64,000 bases of DNA from Haplodiscus bocki (Eukaryota). Numbering within the stretch: the stretch's first letter is position 1; the number at the start of each line of letters is the position of its first letter. The stretch is from contig OZ296649.1 in the NCBI GenBank assembly GCA_965655095.1, forward strand, positions 135,718,001 to 135,782,000. Reading direction: 5' to 3'. Below are positions 9,901-62,475 of this stretch, in pieces. The notes beneath the pieces are model-generated. The model saw nothing but the letters and a program-made list of their open reading frames with translations, had not been told where the DNA came from and searched no databases. The position numbers and the translations under genes were made by a program.

Positions 9901-12900
9901 CAATTGGAACACGGGTGGTGGCGCGGGTGCACTAGGGAGCGCTGCGTGCATCATTTTAGGTGAAGCCATATTAGGAGCCGAAAAAAGCATAGATGCCGCA
10001 ACATTTACAGTTGGCCCAGTGAAGTCACTAGCTGTAGACGTGAATTTCGCTGAAACGTCTTCAGTTGGCATTGAGAAGGCGATACCTTTCGCACTCGGCA
10101 TCCGTTGGTCAGTTATAGCAGTTGGAGACATTGAAGCGTTGACTGACAAAGGCGAAGTACTTCTTTCAGTTGGGTCCCACGCTGCACGACGAATCCTTCC
10201 TGAAGTTGTAAAAAATCATGAAGATCTTCAAAAGATTCAATGATGGCATGTACACACCGAGTAATGAAAAGTGCATTTTAAAACAGTTTTCCAGAGCCGT
10301 TATTTAGAATTCTGCCCATTTTAATACGAGACAGTGTTTCTGGATTTGACAAATTATTTATGCATTTAAAAATTCTATTCATTTTAGTATACATCCGCGA
10401 GGTGATTTTAGACGGTAATGTAGACCACTTTTGGAATGAAATTATGATTTTTAGAAACGGTTATAAGGTAGAATTTAAATTAGCAATTTTTAAGCTAAAA
10501 TTTTAGTTGCCTCTATACTCGGGAGAACTCACACTGAAAAGCGCACAAAGTCCCACTTTAATCTACATACAATTTAATCCACGCTGGCTTTTTTCTACCA
10601 AAAGTAAAACAGGTTTAACCGGACTGGTTTACCAGTAAAAAAAACAACTTGTAGTTTTGATTAGTAATGTCTCAACTCTAACCTAAATTTTGATTCAAAA
10701 ATGATGATCAAATAATCACCCGGAAAATTCACAGCTCTTGCCGATCTGCTAGGAGACAACTTGAAACTTGTTCCAATTTCAGGTCCAACGTAGCTGTCTT
10801 TCTGACCCATTCCAACCATTACACCTAAAACAATTTTACTGTGCAAAATCGAGATTTCTTGCATCTTTCCATGCTGAAAACATAGACTTTAGCGTTGAAA
10901 GTAAAGAAGAGCCAACGACCCCCCTTGAAAAATCTTCCTGACCAATCTCGAAACGTCACCAAGTTTTTCTATGATGAGATACTCCTTCTAAGGAGGTAAA
11001 GTTTCTGAACAGGATTCGGCAAACATCACCTTATATCCAGGAAAACTATTCTGATTTATTGTTGGATTTGAGCTATTCTCATTTGTCATTAGCCGAACTG
11101 TTTTGGCAACCTGACTATTAAATTGCGGGCTGCTAGTTGATACTTGATGTTGCAGTTTAATTCCGCCTGCAGTTGATTAGTTCAGATTTCATCTTATATC
11201 GCAAACGTCTTATAAATCTATCCGAGCCAGTTCAAACTTTAAATCCAATCGGTAACTTTGTTAGTGCGAAGCTGATGACAAACGCCTGCTTTTGAGGTTT
11301 TTTTTAGATATTAAAGCCTTTTCTTTCTGTCAGGTCCAGGTAATATTCATTGCCGTTCGGAGGTTGACCGTTTACACAAGAACACTAGAGTCTGACGTCA
11401 AGAAATGCAAGTTTTGGACAGGATAGAAAAAGTGGGCATAAATCACTTCCAATTAGTGGCTTGACTGTTACCAGTTGTTCTGCAACAGTTACAGAGAGGC
11501 GAAGCTGCGCTTTCCATCTGCTTGCAACGAAGGTCAAAAATGAACAGACTAATTAATTACCCAACCACGAAAACAGCTCATTTTCGTGAACTTTTCCAAA
11601 TAGCAAAGTGTACAGAAATGTTTGAGCAGAAAATGAAATGGAAAATGGCGGTGTGCAGAATTGTTGATTTTCTACAATAAAGCGTTTTTGATTAGCAGCC
11701 ACTTATCCTTGCCGCAGAGTCTTTTTGGAATAATCTCTTCACTGGCCGCAAGAAAAAAATTACCAATTTGAAATGATTTTGCCAGGTATCTCCACACAAA
11801 TCAACAATGTTGTCCCATCATCCTAGCCACGTCATTGAAGGAAAAAGTCCTTTCAGAACATCTTCGTAAAATTTTCGACAGTGGATAGCATATCAGTCAC
11901 GTATACAGCAAACTTGTCAGATAAATTGTGTCTTCCTTATATTTCATTGACCACTTGACCCAAAGTCAGATGATCAGGAAGCTTTTTGGAGAATAGACTG
12001 TCGAGCACAACGCAAAATGGCCTGAACCGTCGGATGATATTCACAACATATTGATCCCTCTCGTTGCAAATTTCGTAGAGTTTTATGCAAAAAAAAACAT
12101 TTCTTTTGACTGCAATCCTCTATCGTAGCGGTAAGTTGTTTCTGGAATGAATTTGCAACGAGGGTTAGGTATGCTCCATGCAACTGCTCGGGTCTCGGGA
12201 AAGTCCCTCCTCTGACAATTTTTTTCAAGGAAATTTTGCATTTTAGTTGCTCTTTTGAGTCGTCCATTTAACGCCAAAAGTATTGCAAAAAAATCTTTCA
12301 GACAAGTTGATCTTTCGTTTTGGTTCGATAAAAATGTTGCGACTGAAACTTGTCGCAAACCAGGCAAATAGGATTTTCAGCTTCCGTTATCTTCTTCACA
12401 AGCTGGTTTGACCTTTTATGACCTCTATTGTTCTCCCTTTTAAAGATAATGGTTTATGGGAATACAGTTTGCATGGTTTTGTACCTCCATAATTGTAAAT
12501 ATCGTTCAGGTACTCTCAATAACAGTCCGCGGGTGTAACTACTGTGGGAATCTTCTGCGCTGCAAGATGAAATTGTTCGGATTCTGCAATTTATGCTGTC
12601 GATTTTCAAATATTATTTGAATTCCTTTAGTAATTTGACCGTTCATTCAGGTACTTCTTTAAAAATAAATTCACAGCAGTCTGAACAATTTCTATATACT
12701 TTCGTTGTTCGCGAGCTTTAATTTTACCTGCAAATGATGCGTTAAATCTTGAGAAATATTTGCTTATTCAATTTCTTTGTTGCCTCATTGTCTGACTCTT
12801 TTGTTGAAACTTTAAACTATCGCATATCGTTTTCTGAAATCCTACTGGCTGATTAAATAAATTTATGCTAATACAATAACATTTGACCGAACTTTTGCTG

Positions 12901-15900
12901 CCAAAAAAGGCTGCTAGCAGAATTGCGCTGTTCCTGCACTACCTGTAGCTGTAGCGGTACCGATCAAACCACTAGTTTCAATACACATCATTCAGTCGGA
13001 ATGTGTAAAGAAAGGAAATCATAAGACTCCTAACATCACCTTCTGCTTCCAGCTTTTTCAAAAGCGACTGAAAAAAGGAAGGAGACAGGGAGACCAGAGG
13101 AATGGGAGTTTGAACGTGAATTTGATGGTAGAGAAATTGAAGATAGATCAAACCTTGGTGTCTAGGTCGTCCAATCACGCTTCGGATCTCAACCATTTCA
13201 TCGCAACTTTCATCAGGAAGGTCTTCTTTCTGGGCCATTCTAGCCATTGGAAACCCAGCCTTTACTGTGTAAGAGCCAGAGTCAATCACAATAGTCTGTT
13301 TGCATTCTTGAAAACATATATATTCAGAGAGAAACTTAGGTATTATATTGGTTTTCGAAAATTATGACTTCTTTAGAAAACTAGTATACTATATCACGTT
13401 TTATCGAAAAAATAAGTCACAGTCCTGCCTATTTGTAGGTGCTGGTTTATGCAATCTCTCGGACACTCACTAGTAAAGAAATTTGATTAACGCATTTTCA
13501 ATAATAATTAAGATAATAATAATTTATCTGAATAACACCACATGTTATCTGAACATTCAACTGATTCAACTGACGAGTGTTTTTTTTGTAAGGTTTAAAC
13601 ATATTGACACTCCTGGAAAATTTAATCATCTGAGGCTCCTCTTCAGCGTGCTTAAGCCCTTTGGAAGTCTCTTCTAACGGATTGTTAGTTATCTAATTTA
13701 ATTTATTGAGTTATTTATATTATATACTGCAGATGAATTAAATTATTATAAATTATTATTGTAAAATATTTGCTTTTTTTTGGCCTGAAGATGATAGTGT
13801 CATTATCGAAACATGTTGTCGTAATTTAAGTTTTTGTTTCATTTATTTGGTTGATAAATATTTCAAACAAGGGTAATACAACAAAGACACTGAGGCGAAA
13901 CTGCTTCGCAACGCTTGCAGAAACGGAATACAAGAAACAAGTCATTCGCTTGATATTTAAAATAAAAACACTGATTCTCAAGCGGCAATGACGCAGTCAG
14001 TAGAGCATGTGACTGCAGCGCGAAAAGTTCGTCCTAGGTTCGAGCCTAGGACGCTCCCTCATCTTTCTGATCAAAATCTAGGAAGAACTGCGAGTTGTGA
14101 ACGGATTGAACAGAAAGTCCAGAGAAGCCTGTGCTATAACAGAGACCGAAACAAAGAGACCAAGAAAGACTTTCCAAGGCACATGCCCCCAAAGAGAAGG
14201 CCTTCACAATGGATGTCTGTGGTCTTTGATTTCTCTAAGACAAATCCCCAAAAATCGATTTCATTCCAATGAGCCCAAAACTTAATTTTTGAGGTATATG
14301 ATAACAGGGTAGATGTATTCGTCTCCGTCGGCAGTAGTCCTTAAAATTTTGATAAAATAGTAAATATATGAATATATTGTTTGTTGTCTAAGCTGTTGAA
14401 AAAAAAAACATTGTACTTTTTCTCTCAAGAAGCGCCGACAATTATTACTGTGTGCTTAACTTAAAAAGTTATCTGCAATACCGCCTGAAATCTGAATTTT
14501 CTGAATTTGAGCAGTGCTCTTGAAGTTTTGATGTGATTTTAAAAAAGACTAGATTACATTCAAGCATAGGCGTCAAGGATACTATGCATTATGGGGCTAA
14601 GAAATGAGCAGTCAAAAACGGAAAATTGAAAAAGCAGAAAATGGGGTGCGAATAAAATGAACAATTTATAAAGAAAAATTCCAACAAATGGGAGCACTTG
14701 AAAGTGAATGAAAGTAAATAGAAATGAAGGTAAGTAAAGAGACGTTCGTTCACTCGCTAAGTTCAAACAGAACGACATTACCTCGTGGTCCAAGTTCAAT
14801 CTTCATCACTCAGCCAGCTAGCCACGAATCGATTTCCGAAGATGCGAAAAAAAAACAGATTAAAATCAATACCACTTGAGTTAATTGCTTAATGCCTATA
14901 AATTCCAAAGACTTGACTGAGGAATTCGAATAAATTAAAAAAACAGGAAACACGTCACCGAAATTCCTCTCTCGGCTGTTGAAAAGTGGCTTCAATTTAG
15001 CCGTACATTGCAGCTAAGAACGAGAGTTAGCAGATGTTTAGTTTGCATAGTTAATGTAAATTTTGTATGATTTAATACATGGGCATTTCATTTGTCTTGA
15101 TGATTGTCTCCTCGTAGATACCGGCTCTTCCTATACTAGATCCGGGAAGGTGTGTTCATTTGCATTTCCTTTGAAGTTGGAGTTTGCAGTGTAATGTTTT
15201 AAGCTGTTACCGCAAATTATCGCATTGCTACTGTGTCTCTTGTTTTTACTTTCGTGTGCGAATAAAAAGTGTACTGGAGCCTACACTAAAAACAGAGCCT
15301 GCTTGAAATTAAAAGACCTTCTCACTTTTAGTGATCCGCTGGTCAAAAGTTGAGTCGACATACCCTCCCCTGAGTCGCAACACCAGGTGGAAAACATCAC
15401 CTGTCTGCACATTCAAATCATGCAATGTGACTGAATTATCATTCAGCTGATTGCCTTTGAAAACCAGTCGCTGCTGATCCAATGGAATACCTTCCTAAAA
15501 TACAAAACTCTTATTATTTCAGAAACTTTTAAGGCCAAAAGAGGACATCTTTGATACATCCTGCAAATTACATTTATGATACATTATTGAAAAACATAGG
15601 CATCAAGAGGCTAGACATAGCACTAAGAAATTAGCACAGTCAACAGACGCGAAGCGGAATTTCCCAATACATTTTGACTGGTCAGTTGAAATCAAAGATA
15701 TTGAGAAACAATTTAGACATAGCAGAAACTTGCTCAGTTTTACGTTTTTTACATTTCTCGAAGATTGGACGGCCTGATGGTGTGACCGGAAAAATCATGA
15801 TTGATAAATTAATTTTTTGATAGAGGGTGTGGCAAGTAGTTGACTCAAGTCGACTTTTTAGGACAAAAACTTGATTGACAAATGGTCTAGTAATTCTAAA

Positions 15901-18900
15901 AGTGTCAATCACGTCTATGGTCAGACTGCCTCATAATCAAAAATTGATATGCCACGTCTTTTCGGGTTATTCTATTTTGCCGCCCAATGTTTAACAAAAT
16001 TGCACTGTAAAAAAAGGCAAAAATGACCGATTACCTGCCACAGTGTCTCGCAATCAGAAAGTGATCTGCGAATCAAGTTTTCTCAGGTTAAGCCACTTCG
16101 CCTCCCAACGTTTCGCAGAGTAAAAAACGCGCAAAAAAATAAATGTCAAAAAGAGACCGTTTCTGACCGTTTACACCAGAAGACTACACACTCTGATGCC
16201 GCCAAAAAGTTTTGGGAGAATGGATTAAAAAACTAGGCACAAGCTCGTTTCAATACACATTCTTCCCATCACTCAAAGGAAATTGAGCAAAATTCACGAA
16301 AAATTAGGGACTACTTGAACGAGAAAATATCACTCGAATGGTGTGACAAATTTCAGAAAAAAAATTGAACAGTTAAGGCACTTGAAAATGAATGAAGTAA
16401 AGTAAATGACCGACCGTAAAAAAGACTTTCACTCACTTAATGCTTACAAACAACTGAAATGAAATATATGGAAGATATGCTGGAATTCTAGACACAGAGG
16501 CAAAGCAGCTGAACTTCGCAACATATTCTGACTTACCCGTTGAAAACAAAGATGAAATTAACAGACAAAAGTCCTGAGAGACATTTGCACCTTGATCGGA
16601 GACATGATTGACTATTCTAAAAATACTATACCATGTGTCTATCGAAAGTTTGTTCAAAAAACCCATTGAGACCAATACCTGTCCCAATGTCTAATAGTCA
16701 AAATTTGATCTGTCTATCATGTTTTTCAAGAATCGCGATTTTATAGTTTAAAAGCTTTACACATTAAACAACGCAAAAATGAACAACACAAGAATCCGAA
16801 AAAAAGGTAACCTGTAAAAAATTTCTAGCTCTCAAAATGGCTCATATCAGTCAACAAGACTTCAAAACAGTTTCAAAAAATTCTCATCTCACTTTTCAAT
16901 GATGAGGACATGTGAATCTTACTGAAACATTAAAAAAGTTGCATAATTTCGGTTAAATAAGTGTCAACTTTCATGATCTGAACCTAAATTTTCACAATTT
17001 GAGATTCAGGGCATGTGTCAATTTTAATGATTGACAGGAGGCACGTGCAGACTTGAACGAAAATCTGATATCTTCTTTACTGCTACTAACCTTTTTGAGT
17101 TTTGAGAACTTGAAATTTTTACATGTAACATTTTTTGGGGACAACTAATACGCTGCCCTCACTGTCTCATTTTCAACAAACTCCTGCTGACAAGAGGCCG
17201 TTTACACTAGATGACTACATTCTCGGATGAGGTCAAAAACTGCCAGTATTGGACAAGAAAAAAAACTATGCTTGAGCAGGTTTCCAATACACATTTTTGT
17301 GTTTCAGTCAGAATGTGTAAAAATGAGAAATTAATCAAAGGAACACAAAAACGTCTTGTCTAATGCGCTTCAAAAGTTCATTGTTGCCCCCAGTTTCAGT
17401 TTCACTTCTCACGTCGAAACGCAATTCTGTGATTCAACTCTTACCACTTGTTCGATTGCGTTTTTGAGGTGGTGTACAGTTTCGTATCTTTTGAACGTCA
17501 CTTCAAACTTTCTACCCGAGAGTAGAACCACTTTCACTTTCACCTCTCGCTCTGTCTCCGGTACCAGCCATCTCTCCAACTTGTCCTTATATTTCACATC
17601 TTCGCCACTTCTCAGTCTGAAACATTCTCTACTATTACGCACTCGGCTAAAATCCGATGAATCCCAATCGCTAGAAAAACAAGAGACGGAGTTTTGAGAC
17701 AGGACGTTTGAGACTCGCAATGAAAATTTAGGCTAATCCTCAAAATGCTGTTAAGGCAAAGAATTTTCCGACTAATAAAATTTAAATTTACTGGTATGGA
17801 ATGCATAATTGCGATTATTAGAGAAAATGAAAAGACTCGGGCTCTAAAAGTATTTTTTCGTACAGATGCCTAGGCTTCTAACAGCTTAAATGAGATGCGG
17901 CTGTAGTTGCGGGCAGTTTCAATTCGAGAGCAACTTTTAATCGAATAGTCCTCTCAGTAGCTGCGAGAAGGAGACTTCGAGAAATTTCGACGTTGCAATG
18001 TGTTAGAGGCCAAAAACCTTTCCATGCCCAAAGAAGAGTCGTTAAATGCAGCAATTTACCAACAATGTGCTTGCAATAGTTTTGAATACTTCTCGGTGGG
18101 CAACTTGCATTCAACTCATCTGTTCTATTTCGAGAAGTCCTCAATTATCTTGACCACTATCATATCATGACATCCTACAAATTAATTTGGTTTGGCTCGG
18201 TACTTCTCTCACAATACTTCTGAAAGTTACTCTTCCAAAACTTCGAGGTCCGTTCTCATCCTTAGCTCTTTAGCAGTCTGAGCTTTTTGTTAGTTTAACA
18301 TTCAAGTTCCATTTTGGTCCTCATGTTAGATTACAACCGCAAACAATTTCCAAAAAAAGGAGAAACAATAGCAAAGGATTTGCAATGATCAAGAGCCTGG
18401 ACTATGTGGAAACTCGCTTATCTAGGGAATCGCTGTAACTTTAGGTTTCCGAAGCTGTTTGCTTCAATGCGACTCCTATTCAAGGATGTGACAATTCGGA
18501 TCAAACAAATTTTTGATGTGATCTACTGTAGTTTATGGTCATGGAACGTAGGTAAAGAATAGTATGTGTTTCCTTTATTTCAACTTCAAAAGATTATAAT
18601 ATTTCATCCATTACTTTGTCTTCCGAATGATATTCAGTTTTTCTTCGTTCAAATAGAAAAGAAAACAACAAAGGATTCACGGATGCTATGCTTAAACAGT
18701 TAGAAATTGAACAGTGAAAGGAGCAGAGCAAGCTAATTCGAAAAAAACAGACAATATTGAAAAATCACATAAAAAAAGGCCAAAACTAGAGAGAAAGCTT
18801 GGATGACTTGGTATCCACAAGCAAGAGAGCTCACTACTTTGAACCCACTCGAAAGTAAATTGAATTACTTGGAATACCCTTCAAAGAGAACGAAAGTAAA

Positions 18901-21900
18901 AAAGACTTTGATTAGCGGCACAAAATTATAATCGAAAGGCAGGACAATCACATCCGAGATGTCAGAAAATGAGATTAGACAGACTATTGTACTCACTTCG
19001 ATATCCCTTTTTCTTTCACGCAGATATCCCTTCCTATTCCATCCGATTCTCCGTTCGGTGTTCCGGTTATTTTTTCAGTTAGCAAACAAGCGAAAGCCTT
19101 AGACCTATAGATTTCGCTATAAGGGTTCGAGCTGATTATCCCTTACAATTTTAATCGCATGAGACGAGACTTCAAAGTCTCTTCGAAGTTTTAATCCCAT
19201 TTGTCCGAGCGCAGATGATAATTTGTCTGAGGTGACCTTTAAAAGTTACGTAACAAAAATCTGAAGGTCACCGCTTTCGTTTTGAACACATTGTTATAAC
19301 TAAGCGTGAAACCACTCAAATCAATGCGTGGCCATCATTTGTTTTAATTGTTAAGCAACCAACACCAGCAAAGTCATTTTTACAATTCGTTCAGCATTCC
19401 GGTTGAACAGAATTGAAAAGTTGTACTTCGACCAAAAAAATTCTGTTGTTTGGTTTCCAATCAATTAATTTAATTGCTTTAACAATTCGGGCAGAACTCA
19501 AAATCGGTCCAAACAACTTTGCTTCATATTTCGCTTTGGTTTGGCCGGAAACCTCGTGTAGTATTCGAAGAAACACGGCGTATTGTTTTGAGCATTTGTT
19601 TCGAAAATCTCCGTAGTAAAAAACCGATAAGAGTTAGCTGACGAAAAAACCAAGCATGTAAATGTGTCATTAAATAATTTCTGTAACTCAAAGTCAAAAA
19701 CCGCCGCATTTTACACTAAATTGATGTTTTGATGTTGAATCCTGGTGGCAGGACAAAACACCCAAACCCAAAATACCCAAAGTTCTAAAATACCCAAGCC
19801 CAATTCATTCAGTCCCAAAATACCCAAGATTCAAATAAGTATACCAACTAAACAATTAACAGCCTCTCAACGCTAAGAGTTTCTAGACGCTACTGATTAC
19901 GTAGGTTTATACATTGCTTCAAAATGGATGCTAGACAGAACCAAATATTTTAGAAGGGGACAAAACAGCCGATTTTGAAAACGGGACAAAATTGCCGATT
20001 TTGATAATGAGACAAAACCGCCGATTTTAAAGTGGGACAAAACCGCCGATTTGTAATAATACAGATCACTAGTCTTTGCAAAGATAGAAGTTGTTCAAGA
20101 TTAAAGCGTCTTGACCTAATTATCGATAAGTAGCAATTAAATTACCAACATACCAATGAAAAGGTTCTACTCCAGAATACCAAACCCAAAATGACTAAGC
20201 CCAAAATACCCGAAGACAAAAAAATTGACTGAAATTCAAATTTTTCTAATATTAGCTTAAAATTCTGGGCGGGCACGAACAGAATATTTTGAAAATTGAT
20301 AATGCCAATATCTGCAAACTAAATTTTCTGTCACCTAATGAAATGCCAATGAAACAAATACTACAAAAACAATCTATTTTAATTTTTGCTTGTTCAGAGG
20401 AGTTCGGTACAGAAAAGATAGGGAGGGGGTGGGTACTACAAATTTAGGTTAAATGGAAGCGGGAGGTTTGATAAAATCTTTGTAGTTGGCATATTCCAAA
20501 ATTTATTAGCCGCAAAATTTGAAGGAAATTGCATTTAGGTAGAGGTATCCCAGTTATTATTTGTAATTGGTAATATAATTGCTAATTATCGATAATTAGG
20601 CCCAGACGCTTTTATCAGAGAAACAATTTTGATGGCAGTTCGTTAACTTTTACATAATCAGCGGTTTAGCCCCACTTTCAAAATCGGCCGTTTCGTATCA
20701 TTTAATTTGAAATCGGCTGCTTTGTCCTGCTCCCCTTCAAAATATTGGTGATGTCAGATTAAAATAACACATGTCAAAATATTTGCAGAAAATTACCCTG
20801 AACAGAAAATCATTTTTGAAAATTTAACATTTTGTTTTCGATGAAAAATAAACGGAAACTTGCATATCCAAAATTCCGTATTTCTTGTCCAAATATTTTC
20901 ATGCAAATAATTTTCTGTTTTTGAGATTTTGGAATTAGCATATTTCAATTTTATTAGTTCTTTTTTCTAAGTGGCCGCGCGTACTTTTCAATTTTTGTCC
21001 TATCCAAAAAGACAAAAAATGATTTCAAACACTTTTTTGAAAACATTAAAGTGTAACCTACAAACTTTTCGGCACTGAGACGAAACTTTGATAACCTTAT
21101 TATTTTGCACCAGACCGGTAAAAAGCACGGATTTGAGCCTTGACGGCCTTATCTGCCTTTTTCGTTTTTGTCGTGAATTTTATTGCATAAGTTTGAGTTT
21201 TCAAAAACCTTAAAATCCAAAAAAGTGAGGCTTTTCAAAGTAGATGCTAGATGTGGTAATAATTCTATTTAGTGTATTCATAATCGTGTATAGAATTTTG
21301 TTGAACAGAGCACTAATATTTAGCATCATATTTACGATATCAATTAAGTAATTACGCAACAGTCGAGTATTTCGGGTCCTTTACTTTTACGACGCTTGTA
21401 AGAATTTAAATGGTATGGTTGTTTAAATCTTGGGTATGTTGGCTTGGGATATTTTGGGACTTTGGGTATTTTGGGGTTTGGTATTTTGGGGTAGAACCGT
21501 TGAATCGTGTTTTTTCCTCAAAATACATCCATGAACTAAAGGGATACTTTCATTGCTTAAAATGAAAATTTTTCCTGGCAAAATTCATAGGCAACTTCTG
21601 CCGCTATTAGAACATAAAAGTGCGCAATCTCAGACAAATTCATGTGCAATAAGGTCTCAGATTCATGGCAAAAAGCCTTTGATACTAACGTTTGTAGAGT
21701 ATTGAAGATAAAGGAGGCATGTTTCAAATGCTCCTCAGACAGTTTTTGCAAAGTTGAATCTTCAAGCTGGGCCATTGTCCTCAAAACTTGGTTACCAATT
21801 GATTCTATCTGTTCAGTTCTGTCTAGACATGACATCACGTCAATCGAATCCGCTCCGAACTAAATCAAAAACAGTAAAAAAATTCTTCGATAAAATTCAG

Positions 21901-50110: not shown

Positions 50111-51884
50111 TCAAAAAATGAAATTCTTTTCCGAGAACTTTTCCGCTTAAATGAAACTAAAGGTAACAATACTTCTTTTGAATCATAGATCAAAGGAACA
50201 GAATGGTTAACTGGAAAGAAAACACATCAAGAAATCGATCAAAATCCGCACTTTCGGAGTTTTTGGCTTACTCTTGGACCAACATACCTGCACAATACAA
50301 GCAAAACGCGACATTCGGCTACAGTTTATATGCAAGTTTTTAGCCTTCAGAAAAACATTGCATGAAAACAAGACAATAAAATCTATTTGATAAAGCAGTT
50401 GTTATAAATGAGGATTTTCGAGAACCTTTGGACAAAATCCGGTTTCAATACACATTCTTCTGTTGTCAGAATGTGTAATAATACTAATAATATACTTGTG
50501 CAACAACGGCAAGAGTCTGTTTCGACATTAGTTACAGAAGAAATCACCTGCAATGAGACAGAAGTGTCGTAAGCAGCTACGTCCCGTCTGGAGAAAAAGG
50601 TCAACGACGTAAATAATTATAAAGGTGCGGATAATACCAGTCAAACTCTGATCGACTTTGACTGGTATGATCCTCACCCATATCAACGTACCACAAGAAC
50701 TACAAAAAAAAATTTCAACTCACCCGTTATTTTCCACCACATAAAAGCCATAGTTGGGCAAAGCATAAATACATGAAAACGTGTAAAAATAATTCCGCAT
50801 TTTCATAAACATAGAATTGATAAAAAATATTACACTGAAAATTACACTGGAAATTACACTGTAGTGTCGTTTTTTGTGTAAATTACACTGGAGTGTCGTT
50901 TTTTGTGTAAAAACTTACTGGCGGGCGAATGATACACAATTTCTTTTTCCGATCGTGGATTTGAAAAACTGCACCTGTACAATTACAAAATTGGTTGTCT
51001 TAAACGAAAACACAATTTCTTAGAAATATGTTTACTAGCATGATGACTAGCACATAGTTTTTTTAAGGAATTCTCCACGAATACCTGTCCGATTGACTTC
51101 AAATGAAAACTAACGTAAACTTCATTGTTTTAATTACAATATTTTTACAAGAATGCGATTAATTATATTATTATAATATTCGTACAAGTATAAGAATAAG
51201 TATATCATTATTCATATTTTAATACGTGTAAAAAAACTTTTTTTAACGAACATTGTGGATTATTATATGAAAACCATTTACGACATGCAAAATGAAAAAG
51301 ATTATTTAAATTATTACAATGTGTTTGAAAATATTCTCGATTTTGAGATAGTTTTCTAAAAAAAGTGACGATGCATTATAGGTTTTTGTAATTTTAGATA
51401 ATAAGGTGTTTTTATATTTGATAGATTTGAATCAATTTACTATTTCATTAAATATAAAACCAAAATGATCACACACGATAAAATGATTAAATAGAATTAC
51501 ATAGAAGATATGATAAAATGATTGAATATGAATAAAATAGATTAATCAAACGATTGTTTGTCTTCTTGCTTATTATTAGCATCAACAAGATGTTTAAAAC
51601 TACTCAAATAAAGAATAACAGATCTTGAAGAGTCAGTTCTTTCTAAACGATAATGCAAATCATTAGTCACATCTGATAGCTTCATTTCATCAATAATATT
51701 TAACGCATATACCATTTCAGATATATTACAATCTTCAAATTCTCTAACCAACATTTTTTAACCTCCAATTCTTCATAGTAGTCGTTATCTAGTTTGTCAA
51801 CAAAATCAAGTTCGTTTAAAAAACATAACACATCTTTCATTGTCACCATTTATATGTATAAAAAAATGATGAGTTCATAAAAAT

Positions 51885-52344
51885 TAAACACGATAACTTT
51901 CAACTTTTCTATTCAAAGGATGTCGCCAATTTCGATTAAAATTATTGATCAAACTTTTAGTTTTGTTAATCATAGCGTTTAATTTTCATTCGACAGCATG
52001 AATATTGTGTTTAATATAGAAATCGCATGTCATATCCAAGTTATTAGCTATTGTTATAATATTCATTTCTTCAATATGCTTAAAATTATATCCTTTTTTT
52101 AAAATCATCAAAAACCTTTTTTTAAAAAATTCTGCCAAGAAATCATTGTTTTATTATCAAATAAGTTAGACTTGACATATGTACTATATTGATTATCATT
52201 AGAAATTAAGTTAAAGTGACGTTTAATAAGCTAATAATCATATTCTTCATTGTGTTGAATAATGTATGCATTTTTGTTAAATGGTTTGATAAATTTATTG
52301 CACGGTTCACAATAAAATTTCCATTTAATTAGATTTTTTGTCAT
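51885..52344 (-). pseudogene. Polinton hypothetical protein with N-terminal CxxC
   Basis: FYCEPCNKFIK...MNIITIANNLDMTCDFYIKHN...WRHPLNRK, with internal stops. Confidence 0.5.
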
Positions 52345-52435
52345 AAAATGAACATTAAAACAAATCTACTTGAAGAATACATCAACTTTGTTGATGTCAC
52401 AAAGAAACAAAAAAAATATATTATCATTCTTTTTA

Positions 52436-52953
52436 TTATGTTCTACAAACAACACATCTTAGTACATCGATATCACCTTTATTTTGATCACATTGCTCAC
52501 AAATACACTGATGACCGCATTGTCTAAAAGCATAAACACTATCTCTTTCGCGACATATAACACACTTTTGATTTAAAAATTTTTTACTACTTCATTGTTC
52601 CCATTAATAATTGGTTTCAACCGTATCTTCATTCTCATCATCTAAAACAACATCTTCATCCTCTTCATCTTCATCTTCTCTAACATTCGGCCAACAAGTA
52701 TGTATCCGAGTATGCTCTAACACTTTGAAAGAATCTACACCACATTTTCCAAGATGATAATCAAACGGATCTAAACTATTGTTTGTCGCGTTTAATAAAG
52801 TTCCTTCTTCAATTTTATCATTTTCAATATATTTGTAATCTCATTATGACAATCTCTAGTACAATTATCGATTGAAGAATCTATTTTATGAAAGACTGGT
52901 TTATCAAATTCATATTCTTTAACAATAACATTTTCGTTCATTATACCATTCAT
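52436..52953 (-). pseudogene. RING-HC (C3HC4) finger protein with acidic linker
   Basis: CVICRERDSVYAFRQCGHQCICEQCDQNKGDIDVLRCVVCRT* at 52564-52436, preceded by EDEDEEDEDVVLDDENED in a shifted frame; absent from the ORF track. Confidence 0.8.
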
Positions 52954-53420
52954 TTATTAAGGAGGTATTTATTGAAATAAAAAATTCTTTTCAATAGTAA
53001 ATTGAAATAATTAAAATGAAATACTAGTCTTCGAAAACTGTCTGGTTTCTTTTATTATTTTCTGATTAGGTTGATGTTATCAATTACATACATATGCCCT
53101 GAACTTTAAAAAACTTGTTTCTTTTAACTGAGGTCATGAAAGACCATCCTGTTATTTTGACATCTCTTTTTTATCTCTTTAATTATACATTTATTGGACC
53201 AGAAGTTGAATAGTTTATCACTACCATATAATGCATCCGACTCACATCCGATTAAGATATAATTATCGACTTTGTCTGTTTTAATATGTTTGAATCCATA
53301 AATCTTTTTGTTTTCGGGAATAACTTCGTTTTTATTATACGATTTACACTCCATCATATCAACTATTCTCTCAAACCGTCTTTCTACAACCATTTTATCA
53401 TCTTCTTTCATCAAAATTTG

Positions 53421-56400
53421 TCATGCAGATTCAAAATCAACAATATTTTGCCTAGGTTCATATTTTCCTTCATAATGAGGAAGCATTTCATGATTTTCGT
53501 TTGCAGGTTTTCTTTTCAACAAAATAATATCGGTAGAGTATGTTTTCTTTTGAGATATTAGATTTAAACACGCCTTACAAGCTCTTACCATCTCGCAATT
53601 GAAACAATTCATTTTACATTTTATAGCACAATCACTACAAATTTTTCCACTATCACAATCTAAACAACCTTGTTTCCTATGCGGTATCTTCATTCCTTCG
53701 AATGTTTTAGTCCATTCAATCGAAAATCTACCTGATACAGTATTGCCTTCTGATAACGATATATATTCATCCAGATTTATCATTCTATGTTCTTCAGAAT
53801 AACCTTTGAACGTGCGTTTAGCCGAAATAACACCAAAATCATCAATCACTAAACAGTACTTTATCTTCGGAGCTAGAAACCAAGCATAGAATATACCCGA
53901 ATTGACGTAATCACTTTTACCTAAGCCAAGAGATTTACCAACGAATCCATTATCAACCAAGTCAGAACAGTATTTTTTGTGTATACAGAGAATCGGTATC
54001 GGTGTAGTAAATACTATTATTACAGAAACCGTCTATGTGCCTAATCACATTGTTCATTAATCTGTTACTATGTGATAAAATATACTTACCAAAATGAGAC
54101 GGCATCGTTTTTACTGATTTCGCTGTATCATAATCGTCAACGCCTTTATCACCTTCTAATTTTACTCTTAAATTACCGTTTTTCAAAGGAAACCATTCTT
54201 TGTCCCTATCATCGAAATTCTCTCTCATCCCAGTCTCAGTAACGCATTTGTATTCTTCGTTTATATCTTTTCTAATATTGCCACAGTAGACTGATATTCC
54301 GATCTTATTAGCAAGGTTTTAAAGTAAATCTTTTCCTTATGACTTAAAGAAATCTCTTTTTTCAAACATATTGGTAACAAACTCTGTATAAGGATTATAT
54401 TCTAGGTTATGACAGAAAAATCCTTCAAATACTTCCAAAATAAAACCACCATATTTAACTATTTCAACAATATCAACGCTTGTCAAAGTATCTATTACAA
54501 TCCCATTTCTCATCCTATTAATTTCCTCAAATCTATTGTTTTGTATGGGTTTTTATTCTTTTCTTTCATAGGAAGGTGTTGAAAAACTAAATTCTCGGAA
54601 TTGTGATATTTCACCATCAAAAAAGCAGATCTATTTAACTCATTCCATCTTCCGCTGTTAAGCAAACTACAAATTGATTCATTCAAATCTTTTTTAAACG
54701 TATAAGCTGTTTCTATTTTAGGCCAAGTACCATTTTCATCTATCTGAGCACTTGGATATAAACTATTAAAATCATATGATACTAACAAATCATCTTTATT
54801 AATTTTTTGTAGTTCTTTACTTATCTCCAATTCTCCTAGTTTTGTTTCCAGAAATTTATCTAATTCTTTCTTAATTATTTTTCGATAGTCTTTTTCATCA
54901 TTTTCAAATTCTAATTTAAATTTCTCGCGTTTAGTACTGATATATTTTAAATATTCATCAATTATACTCGAAATTTCATTATGATTTATTTTTAAATGAT
55001 TTTTAATAGTTAAAATGATCTCATCAAAGTGTTTAAAATCATCAACTCGAAACACCTGTTGAAAGCTCCACATCTACCACCCTTTATGCGTTTGCGAATA
55101 AAATCACGTACATATTTATCGTTAAAAGTGTAAAATTCTCGATCTTTATTTTATGTTCCAAAGCATTTCCAACCTAAACTAGCTTCTGTTAAACAGTCCT
55201 TAATACCAAATCCACTCATGTTTTGCATTTCCGTAGCATGTCTAGCATATATAAAAGCCAAACATAACACGTCTAACTTATATGGCTCCCAAATATGTCT
55301 TAAATCAGCAAAATTACTTTTATTAGTAACCGAGTGTTCAATTTCTCCTTTAAGTAGCTCTGGTTGCAATCCGTATTCTCTACCGATTTTTTCTCAAGAA
55401 CCTTTTATATGAGATTTTGAAGATGTAAATTTAACGTATTGAGGTACTTCAACTGTATTTACTATTTTAACACCACACCGGAATGATGACGATATCAAGC
55501 CTCTAGCGGTTTTTATAATTTTTAATTCTGTTATCTCTTTAACTGAGGAATTCAGTACAACCCAACTATCAAAACCACTACTATTATGCGCAACTAATAA
55601 AAGTCTATAGGAGCTAACTATCTCATCTCCGTCTTTATCAATATAAGTCCTTTCATCACCTTCGTAATTTTCTGAAATATATTTAGGCATGTTCATAACA
55701 GGGTTGCATTAGATCCATCAAAAACGGTAACATTATCTTTCTCTATCACTAATTCATCACTAGTTAAATCTCTATACCACCTATCTCTTAAACGATTCAC
55801 ATCATATAATCCAGCTGCATATCCTTCTGCAAATTCTTGATAGTTAACTGTCTCTAAATCAAATACGAACACATTTTCTAATTGATCTATTGTTTCATGC
55901 TTATGAAATCTATAACGAATTCTTTGTTTTTTATTATTTTCGTTTATTTTATTTTCAACATATTTGAAATTTTTATCTATCTCTTCTACCCCATTAAGCA
56001 AAGAATCTTTTCTTATTTTTCTTCAAAAAAACACAATAATGATTTTTATGAATGTGTACACATATGTCCCACTGTTTAACAGTCCTAGGTAGAATTCTTT
56101 TGTTTTTAGGATCATATATTCCAATATCTATTTTATATCGTTCACAAAAATTGGTATTCTACAACGAGTCATAACATTTGTTCTTCTCTTATATGATTGA
56201 ATGAATCCGAAATACTCCATGCTAAAGTCTTTCTTGAAAACAAAAGTTAATACATTTGAGGAAGCATCCGTTTCCATTTGGTATATAACAGTTTTCACAT
56301 TCATATTCCAATATATTATTAAATTCGTTAGCTCCTCTTCCATCTTCAGATCCGTTTAGTCGTTTAAAATTTCTAAAAAACCCATAAAAATTACCTGTAT

Positions 56401-57030
56401 AATATAAAGAAGGATGATCATCGTATTTGTCTAATATTTTGTCCATGAACTTGGCTAATTCATTACTATCTTCAAAAAATCTATTAGTATCGATCTCTTC
56501 TTCGTCACCTAGAATAAAATACCCATTCGTAAAAAACCCATTTCTCAAATTTTCCATATCTTCTTTGAGAGTGTTTACTGGTAATTCATTGTATTCAATC
56601 TTGTTTTCTGCTAATTCGAGGAATAAACCGAGATCTATCTCATTATCTTCTTTTTTCAACAAATTCTGTAAAATCAAACGGGTTTCCTAGAGAATGTTTT
56701 TAATTCTCTTTTTTAATTGTTTAATTTTTAGTTTAACTTCATCTTTTACCTCTTCAATGTGCGAAATTATTTTTAATACGTCTATTTTATTTCTAATATC
56801 GGTTTTTGATTCAATTCACTCATTAAGTCGCGAAGAAAGTTCCCAAAATTTTCGATCTTTCTGTCTCCTTCTTCGTATGGTTTTTTTAATTCTATTGATT
56901 TGAGAGATCTCATGTTTTTTTTATTATTTTCATCTATATCAATTGCTAACATTTTAATTTTTTTATTCACTACAGCTCTAGCTGTTATTTCTTTTCTCAG
57001 TTGCTTGTTAAATGAAGAATTGTGTTCCAT
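53421..57030 (-). pseudogene. Protein-primed family B DNA polymerase (pPolB), frameshifted
   Basis: Exo I FVFDLET, Exo II AHNSSGFD, Exo III YKLDVLCL, YDFNSLYPS, KIGISVYCGNIRKD, YTDTDS, LAPKIKY; the N-terminal part may be the terminal-protein region. Confidence 0.93.
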
Positions 57031-57089
57031 TTATAAGGAATAAATTTATTGAATTAAAAATATCTATTCAATAAAACATAAAAAACAAA

Positions 57090-57388
57090 ATGGCTAATGA
57101 AACTTGAACCGTGTGTAATATTGAAAAACATATCAACAATTTTTACAAAAATTATTCAGATTGTAAAGAATGTAATATCAAAAGAGGTGTAAAACGTTAA
57201 TATGAAAATATTGATAAAAAATCAATTCAACAAAAAATATATTACGGAAAAAATAGAGATAAACTATTACAGAAACAAAATGATTACAGAAAGAAAAGAA
57301 ACACAGATTATAAAGAAATACTTAGATCCTATGTTGATTTACAAAATAAAATTGAAAGCATTGGAAGAAAATTTGTCAAGGAATGACT
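57090..57388 (+). pseudogene. Small Cys-containing protein upstream of the integrase
   Basis: VCNIEKHINNFYKNYSDCKECNIKRG followed by a basic/helical region, with stops. Confidence 0.45.
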
Positions 57389-58230
57389 CAGAAAACAAAC
57401 AAAATTTTCATAGATGAAATATATTCCAAACCACCTAAAAAGAATTATCCAACAGATAAAACCGAAGTTAACTCTATCGATTACATTTGGACTTTAGATA
57501 ATTTAGACCTAAAAGATTACGGTCCCGAAAACAATAGAGGATACAGATATGTTTTAGTTATCATAGACAATTTTTCAAAAATTGGTTGGACAGTTCCTTT
57601 AAAAAATAAAAATGCTTAAACAATAAAAGACTCTTCCGAAAAAAATTTGAAAAGTTGAAAAAAAAACCAAATTTAATCGAAACTGATCGAGGTGAGGAAT
57701 TTTATAACATTATTCTTCAAGGTTTATTAAATAACAATAACATCAAGCTCTATTCAAGAAATAGTTCATTGGGCAGTCTTTTTGCAGAAAGATTTAATCG
57801 TAACTTAGAGATCTCCTTAAACGACCTGTTTTTGAAAAGAGTGAAACCGATTGGATTGATGTAATACCCACAAAAACGAAACAATATAATGGAATACATT
57901 AAACCGACTAGGTTGACGCCGATTCAATCTAGTTTAAAAAAGAATGAAGGTTATGTTTACAATAATTTATTAGATAATCGTAAGAAAGTGAAACCAAGGT
58001 TTCAAGTAAATGATCTTGTTAGAAGAGCAGATTTAAAGAGAACTTTCTCAAAAGGAGATACAACAAATTGGTCGTATAATTTGTATGAAATCACAGAAAG
58101 TTTTAATGATATAATACCGAGTTATCGCATTGACAATTTACCAGAAAGATATAATGAAGCCTTACTAAAAAAGACAAATTTAACAATGAAAGAAAACAAA
58201 GATGTTATGATAAAATTAAATGTCACGTAG
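57383..58230 (+). pseudogene. Retroviral-like (rve) DDE integrase
   Basis: WTLDNLDL (D), YVLVIIDNFSK, IETDRGEEF (D), AERFNR (E), FSKGDTTNWS; one stop and frameshifts. Confidence 0.93.
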
Positions 58231-59479
58231 ATCAAATCAAAATGTCGTTGTCCATCACTGCTGATAGAAACTAATTTGTTTGTCAAAACTAGAGCATATC
58301 CGTTGATGTCATTAGGGACAACTCCATCAAATTTGAATTCTACTTTGATTGGTTGAGAAATTGTATAGTTTTTTTGATACCTTATATCGAAAACATATAA
58401 ATTATAACCAACATCATCAGCCCTAAAATTGCAAGATCTGAAATCATCATCTGATATATATGGTTGAAGGATATCATCTTTTGTTAAAGCCCTAGAAGCT
58501 TCTTCGATTTGACTATAACCCTGATTATAATCATCATCATCATAATTTAATAATATACCACTATCAGGACACTTTTCTGTCCCGATAATGCATTGAGACC
58601 TAACAACAGGTAATCTACAAAAAGTATCATTATTCAAGTTTTGACTATCTTGCCTATCTCGTAGTTGAAATTCTATAATTATCCATATAGGAACATTCAT
58701 ACTTTTTTGACTACCCAATTCGAAATTCCATAGATTTTGATAGATTACTTCTTTCATAAAAACACTTCGTTCAACATATGTGAGTTCTGTTGGTATCTTA
58801 TCGAAAATCTGTTTCATTAATATCTTTTCTTGTTGAACATTAGATGTGTAATGAGGTACATACCAATGAATGTGATCGATTTTAAATCTAGCATCAGCGG
58901 TACCTACAGCTTTGTCTATAACAGCTTCATCTTTATTTCTTGTTGGAGTCAAATTACAACCGAGGCCATAACTGGTTTTTCTTGACATTCTGCAAAACCA
59001 AAGACATCCTTGAGCATAATTCTGAGATGATATTTACCTTTTACGTTTTTGTTTTGAGCTAGCTCGTCTTTTCTTCTGTTACGACTACGATCAAAACCAA
59101 AAGATAAGTCATGACAATCTTTACTTGATGTTATTAGTTTATACATTAGAGAAACAAGATGGGCATGGCTAACATCTTCCAAATGCTTTCCACTGCCAGT
59201 TGTCAATTTAAAATTACTAAACAACGCAATAGGTCCTACATTAAATAATCGTATATCATTACCGTTAGCATATCTACTATCATCAGCTTTTTAATAACTT
59301 CAAAGTTTATATCAAGATAACTATTTAATAAACTAATAACAACTGTCTTCTCTAGGTATGCTGAGATATATCTGACTATTAGGAGTGTTTATTGTAGATG
59401 TCTCTGCAGGTGAATAATGAAAATGATAACATTTCAGAATTCCCCGATCCACTTCGTAACTTTCATTTAGTTTAAACAT
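58228..59479 (-). pseudogene. Putative double-jelly-roll major capsid protein
   Basis: About 415 codons over three frames; IDHIHWYVPHY, PIWIIIEFQ, LYVFDIRYQ motifs typical of Polinton MCPs. Confidence 0.78.
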
Positions 59480-59554
59480 TTATGTAGCAAAAAACATGTA
59501 TACGTACAATTATATGAGTACTTTCATAGAAATATATGCAGATTTATACTTAGC

Positions 59555-60402
59555 TTTACAATAGATAACATTCAAATGAAATTTGTTTATGTTCTTTCTT
59601 AGATATACATTTGTATTCTAATAAATTATCAACTATAGCAATAATTTCCTAGTTAATGAAGTTAGAATTATTTCCAGCGTGTTTTTCTTGTAGTAATAAT
59701 GTTAATCTATTACATAATTCGTTAGGATCAGATGAAAAAAATATTGTTTTTCAAACACCTGAAGCAGAAACCATTGAACCTGGTGATTTAAGTAATTTTA
59801 TAAGAGTTCTATCTCTAGTACATGGTCGACCGGTAGCTTTTATATCGAAGTGCATTTCCTCTGCAAAATCATACATTAATTTTTTATCCTGTAAACTAGC
59901 AAGATCAACGTTATAGTTTTTGTTCGTTATCATTTTCAAAAGATCTTTCAATTCGAATTCTTCACCTGTGTCACGAAATGTTAACAAATTGTCATGTAAA
60001 GTAATTGGTATTGTATTCATTATTAAAAAATCATTGACTCTATGTGAGCTAGAATCCTTAACTAATCTGAATTCAGTAGTATTTTCAGGATTAGTGATTT
60101 CAGATAGAGGAGACATGAAATATGTTGCTAATATACCTCTACCACTCATTACTTCTAGAAGTTTCTTGTTTAAATTCCCTAATGCTTCGTTGTTATTATA
60201 AGAAGTTTCTGTTGTTGTCTTCGTTACCTTTTCAGAGACATCTTTAATAAATTTAGTGACGTGTTCGAATACTTTTTTCATGTCTTCCATGAAAATTTTG
60301 TTTACCTGATTTATCTTGCAATCTGACTTTCACTTGATTTTGTAATGAAGCCAGCTCTTCTAATTTTTTCAAATCTTCTCCATCTTCAATTGAATAAAAC
60401 AT
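59555..60402 (-). pseudogene. Conserved Polinton protein (C-terminal DPNEL..RL.LL....AGN motif)
   Basis: SSDPNELCNRLTLLLQEKHAGNNS...EIIAIVDNLLEYKCI near 59600-59740. Confidence 0.65.
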
Positions 60403-60535
60403 TTAGAAGAATGTGAATGTGTTTGTCTACAGAAAATGTGAATGAGATCTACTCTTATACGTGTAATTATAGTTTTATTCATACTTTTATAAGAGTAAAT
60501 CCAGGAATACTTGTGTGAATAAGAGTCATAACTTC

Positions 60536-61388
60536 TCGAAAAGGTTTCGTTTCAGGAGTAGATTCTATATACTTTTTTTTGCTCTTGTTACAAATACAAT
60601 ATCTTCCTTGTTCTCTCTAATTTCATCTATCGATAAAAAAATAATTATAATCTTCTCCCGGTGATTTTCTGCATAATTTTTTGAATTCATCATAACTCAT
60701 ATCATAACCTGCTACATCTCTATATATAAATGTTCAATATCTTTTAACGTTTGATTAAACAGAATAATTTTATTACTATTATTTCTTATAGTTCTCCTTG
60801 GCAAATCAAAATAGGATTGTGATAAATATTGAATGTCTAAATCATTATGGCGTCCTCTAATGAAGTATTGGTCTACAAGTCTGCTATTTGATGAACATAA
60901 AACATCACCAAAAACTATGATAGCATTTTCATATTCGTTTAGAGGTTTTATTTCGAAGTATTGGTCTACAAGTCTGCTATTTGATGAACATAAAATATCA
61001 CCAAAAACTATGATAGCCTTTTCATATTCGTTTAGAGGTTTTATCTCATCACTTTTTTTCTTTAATTTTGATTTTAGAATTGGAATACTGTTCTGGATGT
61101 CATTTAGTGATTATATAAAAAACTCGATCTGGTATTCGTGAAAGAATTTTTAACATCAAATAGGTTTTACCCGAAAAACTAGGGCCGACCAATAGTGTTC
61201 GATTGTTATTGTTATTAGTACCGTTTTCAATTTTTGGTTGTTGGTAAGAAACAGCAGTTTTGTTTTGGATTAAATTGTTATCCTTGTTTTCTTTTATTTT
61301 TATTGTAACAGCTTTTACAAACAGTTCGATCTTTCTTGTAATTATTTACATCTATCTTTATACTACATGCTCTACAATTTCGATTCAT
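60536..61388 (-). pseudogene. A32/FtsK-HerA-type DNA packaging ATPase with an N-terminal CxxC..CxxC segment
   Basis: Walker A LLVGPSFSGKT, Walker B AIIVF(G)D, RGRH, YLSQSYFDLP, IRNNSN. Confidence 0.9.
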
Positions 61389-61528
61389 TTAATAAACAGA
61401 ACAGTTCACAATAAACAGATCAGAACAGTTCACATCGAACAGAACAGTTCAAAGTGAACACAGCAATTCACATTGAACAGAACAGTTCTATGTTCTAGGT
61501 TGAAATATTTTTATTTTTATGTTCATAT

Positions 61529-62064
61529 TTATAAACAAGATTCTTTTTTAGTTTCATCAACATATTTACTAAAAATATTACACAGACTTTCAAATTCATT
61601 TTCATCAATTAGATTATCTTGAAAAGATTTCATGTATAAATTATCAAAAGAATTTATTGTTTGTTGATCTTTTTCAGATTGTTTTGTGTTTTTATATTTA
61701 TCTATAATTATCTCATATAATACTTTAATACCAATTGATAATCCGCATGCTGTTGCAGTTGATATTGGAATAGCTATCCTGTAAGGAAACCGATTCCTGT
61801 AAGACTCAAAGTAATAGAACTAGATGTTGTGGTAATAATAACAAATGTATCGAATGATTTTAATATTGTAGTTAGTGCTTTATATTTTTTATAATTCCTT
61901 TTTGACTCGTTATTTTTTTCTTTGGAGTATTGAATCATTTCTTTTAATGTTATTAAATGAATTGTTGAAGGAATTCACGTTGTTTAGTTTTTTTCTAATC
62001 GTTGTTCTAAATCAATATTTTCTAATGGTGCAGATGGGTATGATCTTTCTGTTTTTTGGTCCAT
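61529..62064 (-). pseudogene. Polinton membrane-associated protein (coiled coil plus hydrophobic hairpin)
   Basis: MDQKTERSYPSAPLEN...; FVIITTTSSSITLSLTGIG...IAIPISTATACGLSIG; ...QDNLIDENEF. Confidence 0.6.
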
Positions 62065-62078
62065 TTATACAACATAAT

Positions 62079-62475
62079 TTAAACAAATTTGCCTAGGTGA
62101 AGACCTTTTCCGGTGTAGTAAAACGTTATCAGCTCTGGTAATGTTGATAGAGCCTGTTCAGAAGTTTCAGAAACAGCTGCTGTAGCTATTTTTGCTGTTA
62201 AATCTAAGGCTCGTCCCGGATTACTTAATACGTTTTTTACCATCTTTTTTTGATACATTGAGTCCTTTTTTACCTAGATTTATGAAAAAGTCGCCGAGAG
62301 CTTCTGCTTGTATATTATTATCACTAACAGTCATAGATTTTTTTCTATTACAAACTGAACAATAACCAATCAATACTTTATTACCTTCGGAGGTTATATC
62401 ACCATAAATGTTTTTTGTAGCAGATCGATGTCTAGCTCCAACGCAATTATCGCTTTCAAAGTTTTGAAAGCTCAT
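62079..62475 (-). pseudogene. Zn-ribbon plus amphipathic-helix virion/core-like protein
   Basis: GYCSVCNRKKSMTV...AEALGDFFINLGKKG...ALSTLPELITFYYTGKGL. Confidence 0.55.

Follow-up and report, generated by a model that had tools for sequence, protein, structure and literature searches.

PARP4, or vault PARP (Clade 5), carries a PARP catalytic domain followed by a VIT domain, a vWA domain and a long variable tail. The same order is found in a gene on the minus strand of a stretch of 64,000 nucleotides from Haplodiscus bocki (assembly GCA_965655095.1, contig OZ296649.1, positions 135,718,001 to 135,782,000), which we call the window and in whose own numbering its features are given; the subject of the present analysis is a short fragment of actin, including the DNase I-binding loop (D-loop), that is encoded in the tail of this gene. 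To our knowledge, no function has been agreed on for either PARP4 or the vault particle in the decades since vaults were discovered, and we know of no PARP4 biochemistry other than that done on the vertebrate protein, which has lost this module; human PARP4, which we take to be the only one studied biochemically, presumably lacks the actin piece, as its domain map indicates.

The association of PARP4 with actin has been noticed before. Perina et al. 2014 (PMC4245714) described an extra C-terminal "actin" domain in some PARP4-like proteins, with Capsaspora as the example, as well as actin or actin-binding domains in the PARP4-like proteins of Salpingoeca and Acanthamoeba, and suggested a link with the cytoskeleton. 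The PARP4-actin fusion as such is already known and the gene in the window is a further case of it. In the literature that we searched on PARP4 with actin, with the D-loop or with a vault-cytoskeleton connection, nothing specific was found beyond that paper: nothing on the "domain" being restricted to actin residues 2-74 or on the invariance of its D-loop under purifying selection, nothing on the generality of the fragment in non-vertebrate animals and its absence from the vertebrate PARP4s examined, and nothing on its pairing with a ubiquitin-like domain (Ubl), polyproline or WH2.

The fragment is split between two exons of the minus strand, both with phases 1-1 and canonical AG/GT sites. Exon A (13306-13154, 153 nt) encodes actin-like residues ~8-41 and the first base of the G42 codon; exon B (10824-10720, 105 nt) encodes the rest of G42, actin residues 43-55 and then 21 further residues, and in translation the two exons together give actin residues ~8-57. 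They are separated by an intron of 2329 nt (13153-10825) that interrupts the G42 codon of the D-loop behind its first base, and the loop is coded in two parts, 13172-13154 (G36-Q41 and the first base of G42) and 10824-10784 (the rest of G42, then V43-G55). Exon A reads through the beta1/phosphate-1 strand IVIDSGS, KAGF, a lineage-specific expansion of ~12 residues and SVIGRPRHQ. BLAST alignment to host actin resolves the expansion into two 6-residue insertions between KAGF and the strand preceding the D-loop, in agreement with the diverged phosphate-1 strand and ~12-residue insertion reported in a preliminary description of the locus. The D-loop from G36 to G55, which starts GRPRHQG, is identical at 20/20 positions to the canonical, intron-bearing actin of the host (C2:47.6 Mb), and the identity claimed earlier for actin 36-55 is thereby borne out. 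Past G55, E57 is the sole remaining match to actin in exon B. The preliminary description had similarity ending right after G55, which holds for this gene apart from E57 and fails for early-branching orthologues, where conservation continues up to ~P70.

A complete actin fold would comprise ~375 residues in four subdomains, with the phosphate-1, phosphate-2 and adenosine motifs, and of this the gene retains only residues ~8-57; in a relaxed tblastn, four host actin-family proteins found no further actin-like segment in the 64 kb of the window. The Pfam Actin profile (PF00022) matches exon A with an E value of 0.006 and 15.7 bits, below its cut-off of 27 bits, as is expected because exon A is a fragment. 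The fragment is not an actin, and its short extent predicts that it would be unable to bind nucleotide or to polymerise; the earlier view that it cannot fold as actin stands. A separate actin or Arp gene was considered and ruled out, since the window has no more actin-like exons and no in-frame Met. In the 1.5 Gb host genome exon A occurs once and exon B, besides itself, matches actin genes only. The D-loop DNA shares 53/60 bases with the nearest host actin, the 7 differences being all synonymous, and its best nucleotide match anywhere in the host genome is 37/40; near-identical DNA, which the preliminary description had named as a sign of recent insertion, was thus not found, and these matches together with the uniqueness of exon A rule out recent copying from a host actin. 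Among the intronless actins of the host, the one that scores best (C6:42499827-42500945) has a slightly non-canonical D-loop, with HVG for HQG and KTSY for KDSY, so that the PARP4 copy is nearer to consensus actin than this paralogue is.

Selection on the fragment was measured against a related species, represented by an ENA contig of 118 kb, to which we walked from a vWA open reading frame with 75% identity. Between the two species exons are ~75-80% identical in DNA and introns are unalignable. Both actin exons are kept in the related species (exon A at L021 15098-15238, exon B at L021 18965-19099) and the D-loop intron interrupts the same base in the same phase. The 20 codons of the D-loop show 10 synonymous differences and not one that is non-synonymous (S 13.3, N 46.7), to be compared with a proportion of non-synonymous differences (pN) of 0.44 in the flanking 75 codons; at the flank rate ~20 replacements would be expected in the D-loop, and the probability of none is ~2e-12 by our own arithmetic from the codon counts. 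These codon comparisons argue strongly that the D-loop is under very strong purifying selection. The comparison of synonymous with non-synonymous changes that had been proposed at the outset gives 7 synonymous and 0 replacement differences with respect to host actin, and 10 and 0 with respect to the related species. The accompanying idea that selection acts on the D-loop surface alone has to be given up, because D11, G13, K18, G20 and P27 are conserved too and, in early-branching lineages, conservation extends to ~P70.

The distribution of the fragment was examined by a region-restricted search with the Nematostella sequence, limited to proteins of 1005-3197 residues in order to exclude ordinary actins; the piece was already present in 5 of the first 150 PARP4 matches. 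The restricted search found it in PARP4 or PARP4-like proteins of the filasterean Capsaspora, the ctenophore Bolinopsis, seven sponges, five cnidarians, bivalves, one gastropod, two hemichordates, two crinoids, the tunicate Clavelina, the flatworm Macrostomum and the acoel Convolutriloba, which answers the question raised earlier of whether such fragments occur in other VIT-vWA/PARP proteins. No vertebrate PARP4 was among the matches of this search, and the fragment profile gave neither a match nor a remnant in the PARP4 of Latimeria and of one teleost. A second PARP4-like gene that lacks the piece exists in some animals, Antedon and Saccostrea among them. Moreover, RefSeq/UniProt PARP4 entries of many invertebrates carry a precomputed PF00022 match, and the D-loop is present in all full-length PARP4 isoforms of Nematostella and Hydra examined.

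The placement of the piece, in the tail beyond the post-vWA exon, is the same across annotated PARP4 proteins, and the order in the window is colinear with that of Magallana, Macrostomum, Hydra, Mytilus and Nematostella. In every PARP4 found, homology to actin is limited to residues ~2-74, the sequence being kept up to ~P70 in sponges, cnidarians and Capsaspora and only to ~E57 in bilaterians. Among 26 fragments, from Capsaspora to the tunicate, D11, G13, R37, P38, R39, G42, V43, M44, G46, M47, G48, Q49, K50, Y53 and G55 are invariant, and K18, G20, G23, P27, G36, H40, V45, D51 and E57 are conserved in >=90%; in the phosphate-1 loop, G15 has been lost and S14 varies. The window sequence carries every invariant residue of this alignment, and the profile built from the 26 orthologues matches its exon A reading frame with 23.7 bits (E 2e-7). 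Since the PARP4 of Capsaspora shares the fragment, the alignments show that it was acquired by PARP4 before animals arose, with a reconstructed ancestral extent of actin ~2-74. Additional copies were seen in two animals: Bolinopsis (P0168) has tandem copies at 1228-1291 and 1334-1398, the first with a degenerate D-loop, and in Convolutriloba (P0269, ~1515-1607) a degenerate upstream copy is visible.

Intron positions, compared in the window, the related species, Nematostella PARP4 and host actin, bear on the origin of the fragment. The canonical host actin has its intron exactly between codons 41 and 42, in phase 0, and Nematostella PARP4 has one at exactly the same place and phase; in the window and in the related species the intron lies one base 3' of this position, in phase 1 within G42. 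The one-nucleotide distance from the actin 41/42 intron noticed previously is thus confirmed with respect to host actin. With the Nematostella PARP4 intron exactly at actin 41/42, it is plausible that the fragment came from an intron-bearing actin gene, the one-base offset being a later slide in this lineage; an independent intron insertion at a CAG/G proto-splice site is possible. Of the earlier proposal of capture from a genomic actin gene, the kind of source is made plausible by Nematostella, while the event is pre-metazoan and not special to this genome.

The remainder of the gene was mapped on the minus strand of the window. Upstream of the actin exons the body of PARP4 occupies 40681-26675, with PARP helical and catalytic domains, VIT, vWA and post-vWA exons. 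The helical domain is in exon 39512-39054 (Pfam and exon mapping) and the catalytic domain in exons 38603-38253 and 34320-33787, the latter with a match to PF00644 (E 4.6e-10); the catalytic His-Tyr-Glu triad is present, with LFHGT in the first of the two and GVYFS and QEVVVYD in the second. The VIT exon (33443-32748) and the vWA exon (32262-31225) were located by colinear tblastn to annotated PARP4, with which the post-vWA exons (30823-30527 and 26944-26675) are colinear too. From the catalytic domain to 26.7 kb the window is colinear with annotated PARP4, with identities of 48-61% in VIT and 33-38% in vWA by tblastn, and the protein is ~40% identical to its best annotated matches, which are mostly molluscan together with the sea urchin Lytechinus. 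With the vWA exon as query, 866 matches were obtained among 1.84 billion representatives, PARP4 proteins being at the top, and the orthologous reading frames of the related species have precomputed PF08487 and PF00092/PF13768 matches. The most upstream exon mapped, 40681-40280, is kept in the related species and has no BRCT match in Pfam.

Between this body and the actin module lies a Ubl encoded by two exons of the same strand. The first, 17670-17445, covers the N-terminal half (PF00240, E 6e-5) and is kept in the related species; the second, 15494-15326 (PF00240, E 4e-11), ends at a phase-1 donor, AAAA/GTGAGA at 15326/15325, that joins exon A in frame. A donor GG/GTATGT, when spliced to exon A, gives a frameshift with a stop after 7 codons and at first suggested a separate gene for the actin exons; this model was dropped because the Ubl exon of the related species runs past RGG to a phase-1 donor, whose equivalent in the window is the one just given. 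The Ubl is a beta-grasp domain ending LRLRGG followed by Tyr, and the actin module begins ~17 residues further on. The residue after the Ubl GG is Tyr in the related species also, and P, H or R in orthologues; a residue other than Pro after RGG would in principle allow a deubiquitinase-type cleavage splitting the PARP4 body from the tail with the actin fragment. Downstream, a GC-rich polyproline repeat exon (995-3, minus strand), with runs of 5-6 Pro separated by xAG[IV]LSAA, is probably a later exon of the same PARP4 gene, whose 3' end lies beyond the window; the repeat resembles a formin FH1 region. No further Pfam domain was found in the open segments downstream in the window. This mapping shows exons A and B to be constitutive-looking coding exons of a PARP4 orthologue whose predicted order is PARP catalytic domain, VIT, vWA, Ubl, actin fragment, polyproline; the embedding of the fragment in a PARP, as first described, is supported by colinearity with annotated PARP4 carrying the same piece and by phases that fit through AAAA/GTGAGA.

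The tails of other PARP4 proteins hold several recurring modules beside the actin piece. A Ubl ending RLRGG precedes it by 14-110 residues in Dysidea, Dreissena, Physella, Macrostomum and Convolutriloba, as in the window, and polyproline runs of 4-10 residues occur 100-600 residues downstream of it in nearly all orthologues. The contig of the related species also has polyproline tracts after the D-loop (L023 ~13919-14788), and its alignment with the exons downstream of exon B yields nothing beyond this low-complexity polyproline; further on (L023 ~17640-19328) it has a long FG-type repeat (SLFGSSSAQPASGGLFGSA...), and Magallana PARP4 has a weak Nucleoporin_FG match in the equivalent region. 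Five sponge PARP4s have, after the polyproline region, a WH2 motif of the form R-G-x-L-L-x-x-I-x-x-G-x-x-L-K-K-V (P0220 ~1943-1968; P0185 ~2118-2143; P0197 ~1964; P0221 ~1663; P0224 ~1947), for which the Pfam WH2 profile (PF02205) gives 29 bits in Oscarella, above the cut-off, and 22.3 bits in Amphimedon, just below it. Bivalve tails contain a fragment of the Hsp70 substrate-binding domain, limited to profile positions ~378-526 (Magallana, P0250, ~2040-2180, E 2e-28; Dreissena, P0244, ~2177-2323, E 4e-27), and a 14-3-3 domain is found in the PARP4 of Capsaspora and Oscarella.

Other arrangements of actin were met in the course of these searches. Balamuthia and other protists (P0210, P0183, P0184, P0195, P0199, P0216) have STAND NTPases with DUF4062 (TIR-like), NACHT, TPR and a complete C-terminal actin; in P0261, P0263 and P0265 the actin is split after residue ~57 by a large vWA insertion; and in Anaeramoeba the VIT-vWA protein P0192 has actin 41-373 followed by a second fragment, 7-59.

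Our favoured reading, held tentatively and at somewhat under an even chance, is that the module is a self-derived mimic of the pointed face of actin that docks PARP4 on the barbed-face cleft of actin. In the filament, residues 40-50 of the D-loop are inserted into the next subunit, in the hydrophobic cleft that separates its subdomains 1 and 3. The fragment would mimic the pointed face, that is subdomain 2 with the D-loop, and the copy in PARP4 would dock the enzyme, or a particle carrying the enzyme, onto the subdomain 1/3 cleft, either in monomeric actin or in the last subunits of a filament at its barbed end; the polyproline tracts downstream, through recruitment of profilin-actin, and WH2 in sponges may act jointly with the docked module. 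The absolute invariance of the D-loop would follow because the partner surface, on actin itself, is invariant, and a ligand for the actin cleft is the simplest reading because the copy has lost all else of actin and yet keeps the pointed-face surface unchanged. A neighbourhood of polyproline and WH2 is typical of proteins acting at actin monomers and barbed ends, and the polyproline tracts and the sponge WH2 appear to favour docking over a decoy. In the AlphaFold2 (AF2) model the fragment forms a three-stranded sheet, predicted with confidence (pLDDT ~88), that bears a flexible loop (pLDDT <50), as in actin; a Foldseek search with this model returned actins only, with TM ~0.4, and added no information. 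When the complex of host actin with the Nematostella fragment was predicted, ipSAE was 0.54 in all three runs and 0.00 for three controls, with a contact agreement of >=98% and a partner pLDDT of >=71, which lends the docking model weak support.

Several points weigh against this reading. The score of 0.54 falls in a band that is more often wrong than right, and the predicted complex may do no more than echo solved structures of F-actin. Since the D-loop is flexible when isolated and makes its contact in F-actin cooperatively, the affinity of a lone peptide may be low, and the conservation of D11, G13 and K18 in the phosphate-1 hairpin is not explained by simple docking of the loop. With a simple pattern, WH2 was not seen in phyla other than sponges; in the window there is no Pfam match to PF02205 downstream and no convincing pattern match below 10.7 kb. 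The Ubl, Hsp70 and 14-3-3 pieces in PARP4 tails would fit an array of baits as well as an adaptor tail. We infer the inclusion of exons A and B in the mRNA from their conservation and from the orthologues, the public runs for the species being DNA, from one study. Finally, the residues of the major vault protein (MVP) that hold PARP4 are conserved only in vertebrates, where PARP4 is in the vault lumen, according to a structural paper of 2025 (PMC12280208); as a consequence, no vault tethering of invertebrate PARP4 is claimed here.

An unlikely alternative to docking is that the D-loop copy serves as a bait, mimicking the target of pathogen effectors or proteases together with the Ubl and, elsewhere, the pieces of Hsp70 and 14-3-3; PARP4 would either sense that the copy had been modified or cleaved, or have the effector diverted onto itself. 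The D-loop is targeted by ACD toxins at K50, by grimelysin/protealysin at G42-V43 and by MICAL, and a decoy, having to match an invariant target, would likewise yield the invariance observed. That pieces of unrelated hub proteins gather in the same disordered tail (a Ubl ending RLRGG, actin 2-74, Hsp70 378-526, 14-3-3) also speaks for a bait, as do the protist STAND NTPases in which the TIR-like DUF4062 is fused to actin, DUF4062 having recently been connected with immunity and with TEP1, a vault protein (bioRxiv 10.64898/2026.05.01.722283). Those protist fusions, however, carry full-length actin and not the fragment; a module fixed before animals arose and kept in free-living sponges, cnidarians and a filasterean would need a very old and universal attacker; twenty invariant residues with conserved beta-strands far exceed the needs of a site of cleavage or modification; a setting with polyproline and WH2 is characteristic of actin-assembly factors; and no signalling domain follows the module in the window. 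The wider form of the same idea, in which the ancestral PARP4 tail would be an array of baits copied from highly conserved hub proteins (ubiquitin and the actin D-loop, joined in some lineages by 14-3-3 and the substrate-binding domain of Hsp70) by which PARP4 and the vault system would detect or soak up pathogen effectors directed at those hubs, we consider quite unlikely. We also regard as unlikely a reading in which the copy binds not actin but a protein whose normal target is the pointed face of actin, such as a DNase I-type nuclease, cofilin, MICAL, tropomodulin/leiomodin or myosin, which would be sequestered or brought to PARP4 for ADP-ribosylation. Invariance of the whole loop fits a partner that sees its full length, and early-branching orthologues keep SKRGIL(T/S)L (actin 60-67) besides the D-loop; in the structure of actin with DNase I it is residues 60-67 and the D-loop together that contact DNase I. 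Bilaterian versions, including that of the window, have nevertheless lost residues 58-70 and kept the loop, the polyproline and WH2 motifs point to actin itself, and the predicted complex with actin held up, albeit weakly, against its controls.

The possibility that the fragment is a neutral relic, namely a decaying and untranslated piece of an actin gene or pseudogene, situated in an intron of PARP4 or downstream of it and either recent or kept similar by gene conversion, is very remote in our judgement. The N-terminal part is indeed diverged and carries insertions, and the public runs are DNA only, as such a relic would allow. The 10 synonymous and 0 non-synonymous differences in the loop, the pN of the flank and the divergence from host actin nevertheless exclude a recent neutral insertion; splice sites and phases are conserved in the related species, the seven differences to the nearest host actin include no replacement and the best nucleotide match is 37/40, and the same fragment is found in RefSeq PARP4 models of many phyla. 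Gene conversion is unlikely because of the selection data and because the two halves of the D-loop are 2.3 kb apart, beyond a single conversion tract.

At ~51000-64000 of the minus strand the window contains an AT-rich block with a GC content of ~0.28-0.30 and many broken open frames. Its motifs include YDFNSLYPS and YTDTDS of a B-family DNA polymerase, a P-loop GPSFSGKT and a RING finger (PF13920, E 1.4e-9); the polymerase pieces are not recognised by Pfam. The block looks like a decayed mobile or viral element with a protein-primed polymerase.

That the ancestral PARP4 carried a piece of the filament-contact surface of actin yields a concrete hypothesis, according to which PARP4 would be targeted to actin monomers or barbed ends. 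We know of no actin-binding motif derived from actin itself, and if docking is true the module would be the first; if instead it is a bait, it would count among the early examples of innate defence by target mimicry, and an array of baits would parallel, in animals and their forerunners, the integrated decoys of plant immune receptors. Plant NLR integrated decoys likewise consist of a conserved fragment of a host target kept identical inside a larger enzyme or sensor, though this is an analogy only: PARP4 has no NLR/STAND module and no known effector, and its module is far older and more uniformly conserved.

The closest comparison is with actin itself. In the longitudinal contact of F-actin the D-loop plays the part described above, and the PARP4 fragment is identical to it over residues 36-55 and is modelled by AF2 with the same strand-loop-strand arrangement and flexible loop; it represents, however, ~15% of actin, without subdomains 3 and 4 and most of subdomain 1, and because most of actin is absent it can offer a pointed-face surface but cannot accept a next subunit. 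WH2, RPEL and the Ena/VASP GAB motif beside polyproline share the target proposed here, the hydrophobic cleft of the barbed face, and have a neighbourhood similar to that in PARP4 tails. WH2 and RPEL bind as an amphipathic helix, whereas the PARP4 fragment, which has no sequence relation to them, would bind as actin's own loop. With respect to the PARP4-like "actin domain" of a few protists of Perina et al. 2014, the module described here comprises only actin ~2-74, occurs widely in animals though in neither of the two vertebrate PARP4s examined, shows measured purifying selection on its invariant D-loop and often follows a Ubl.

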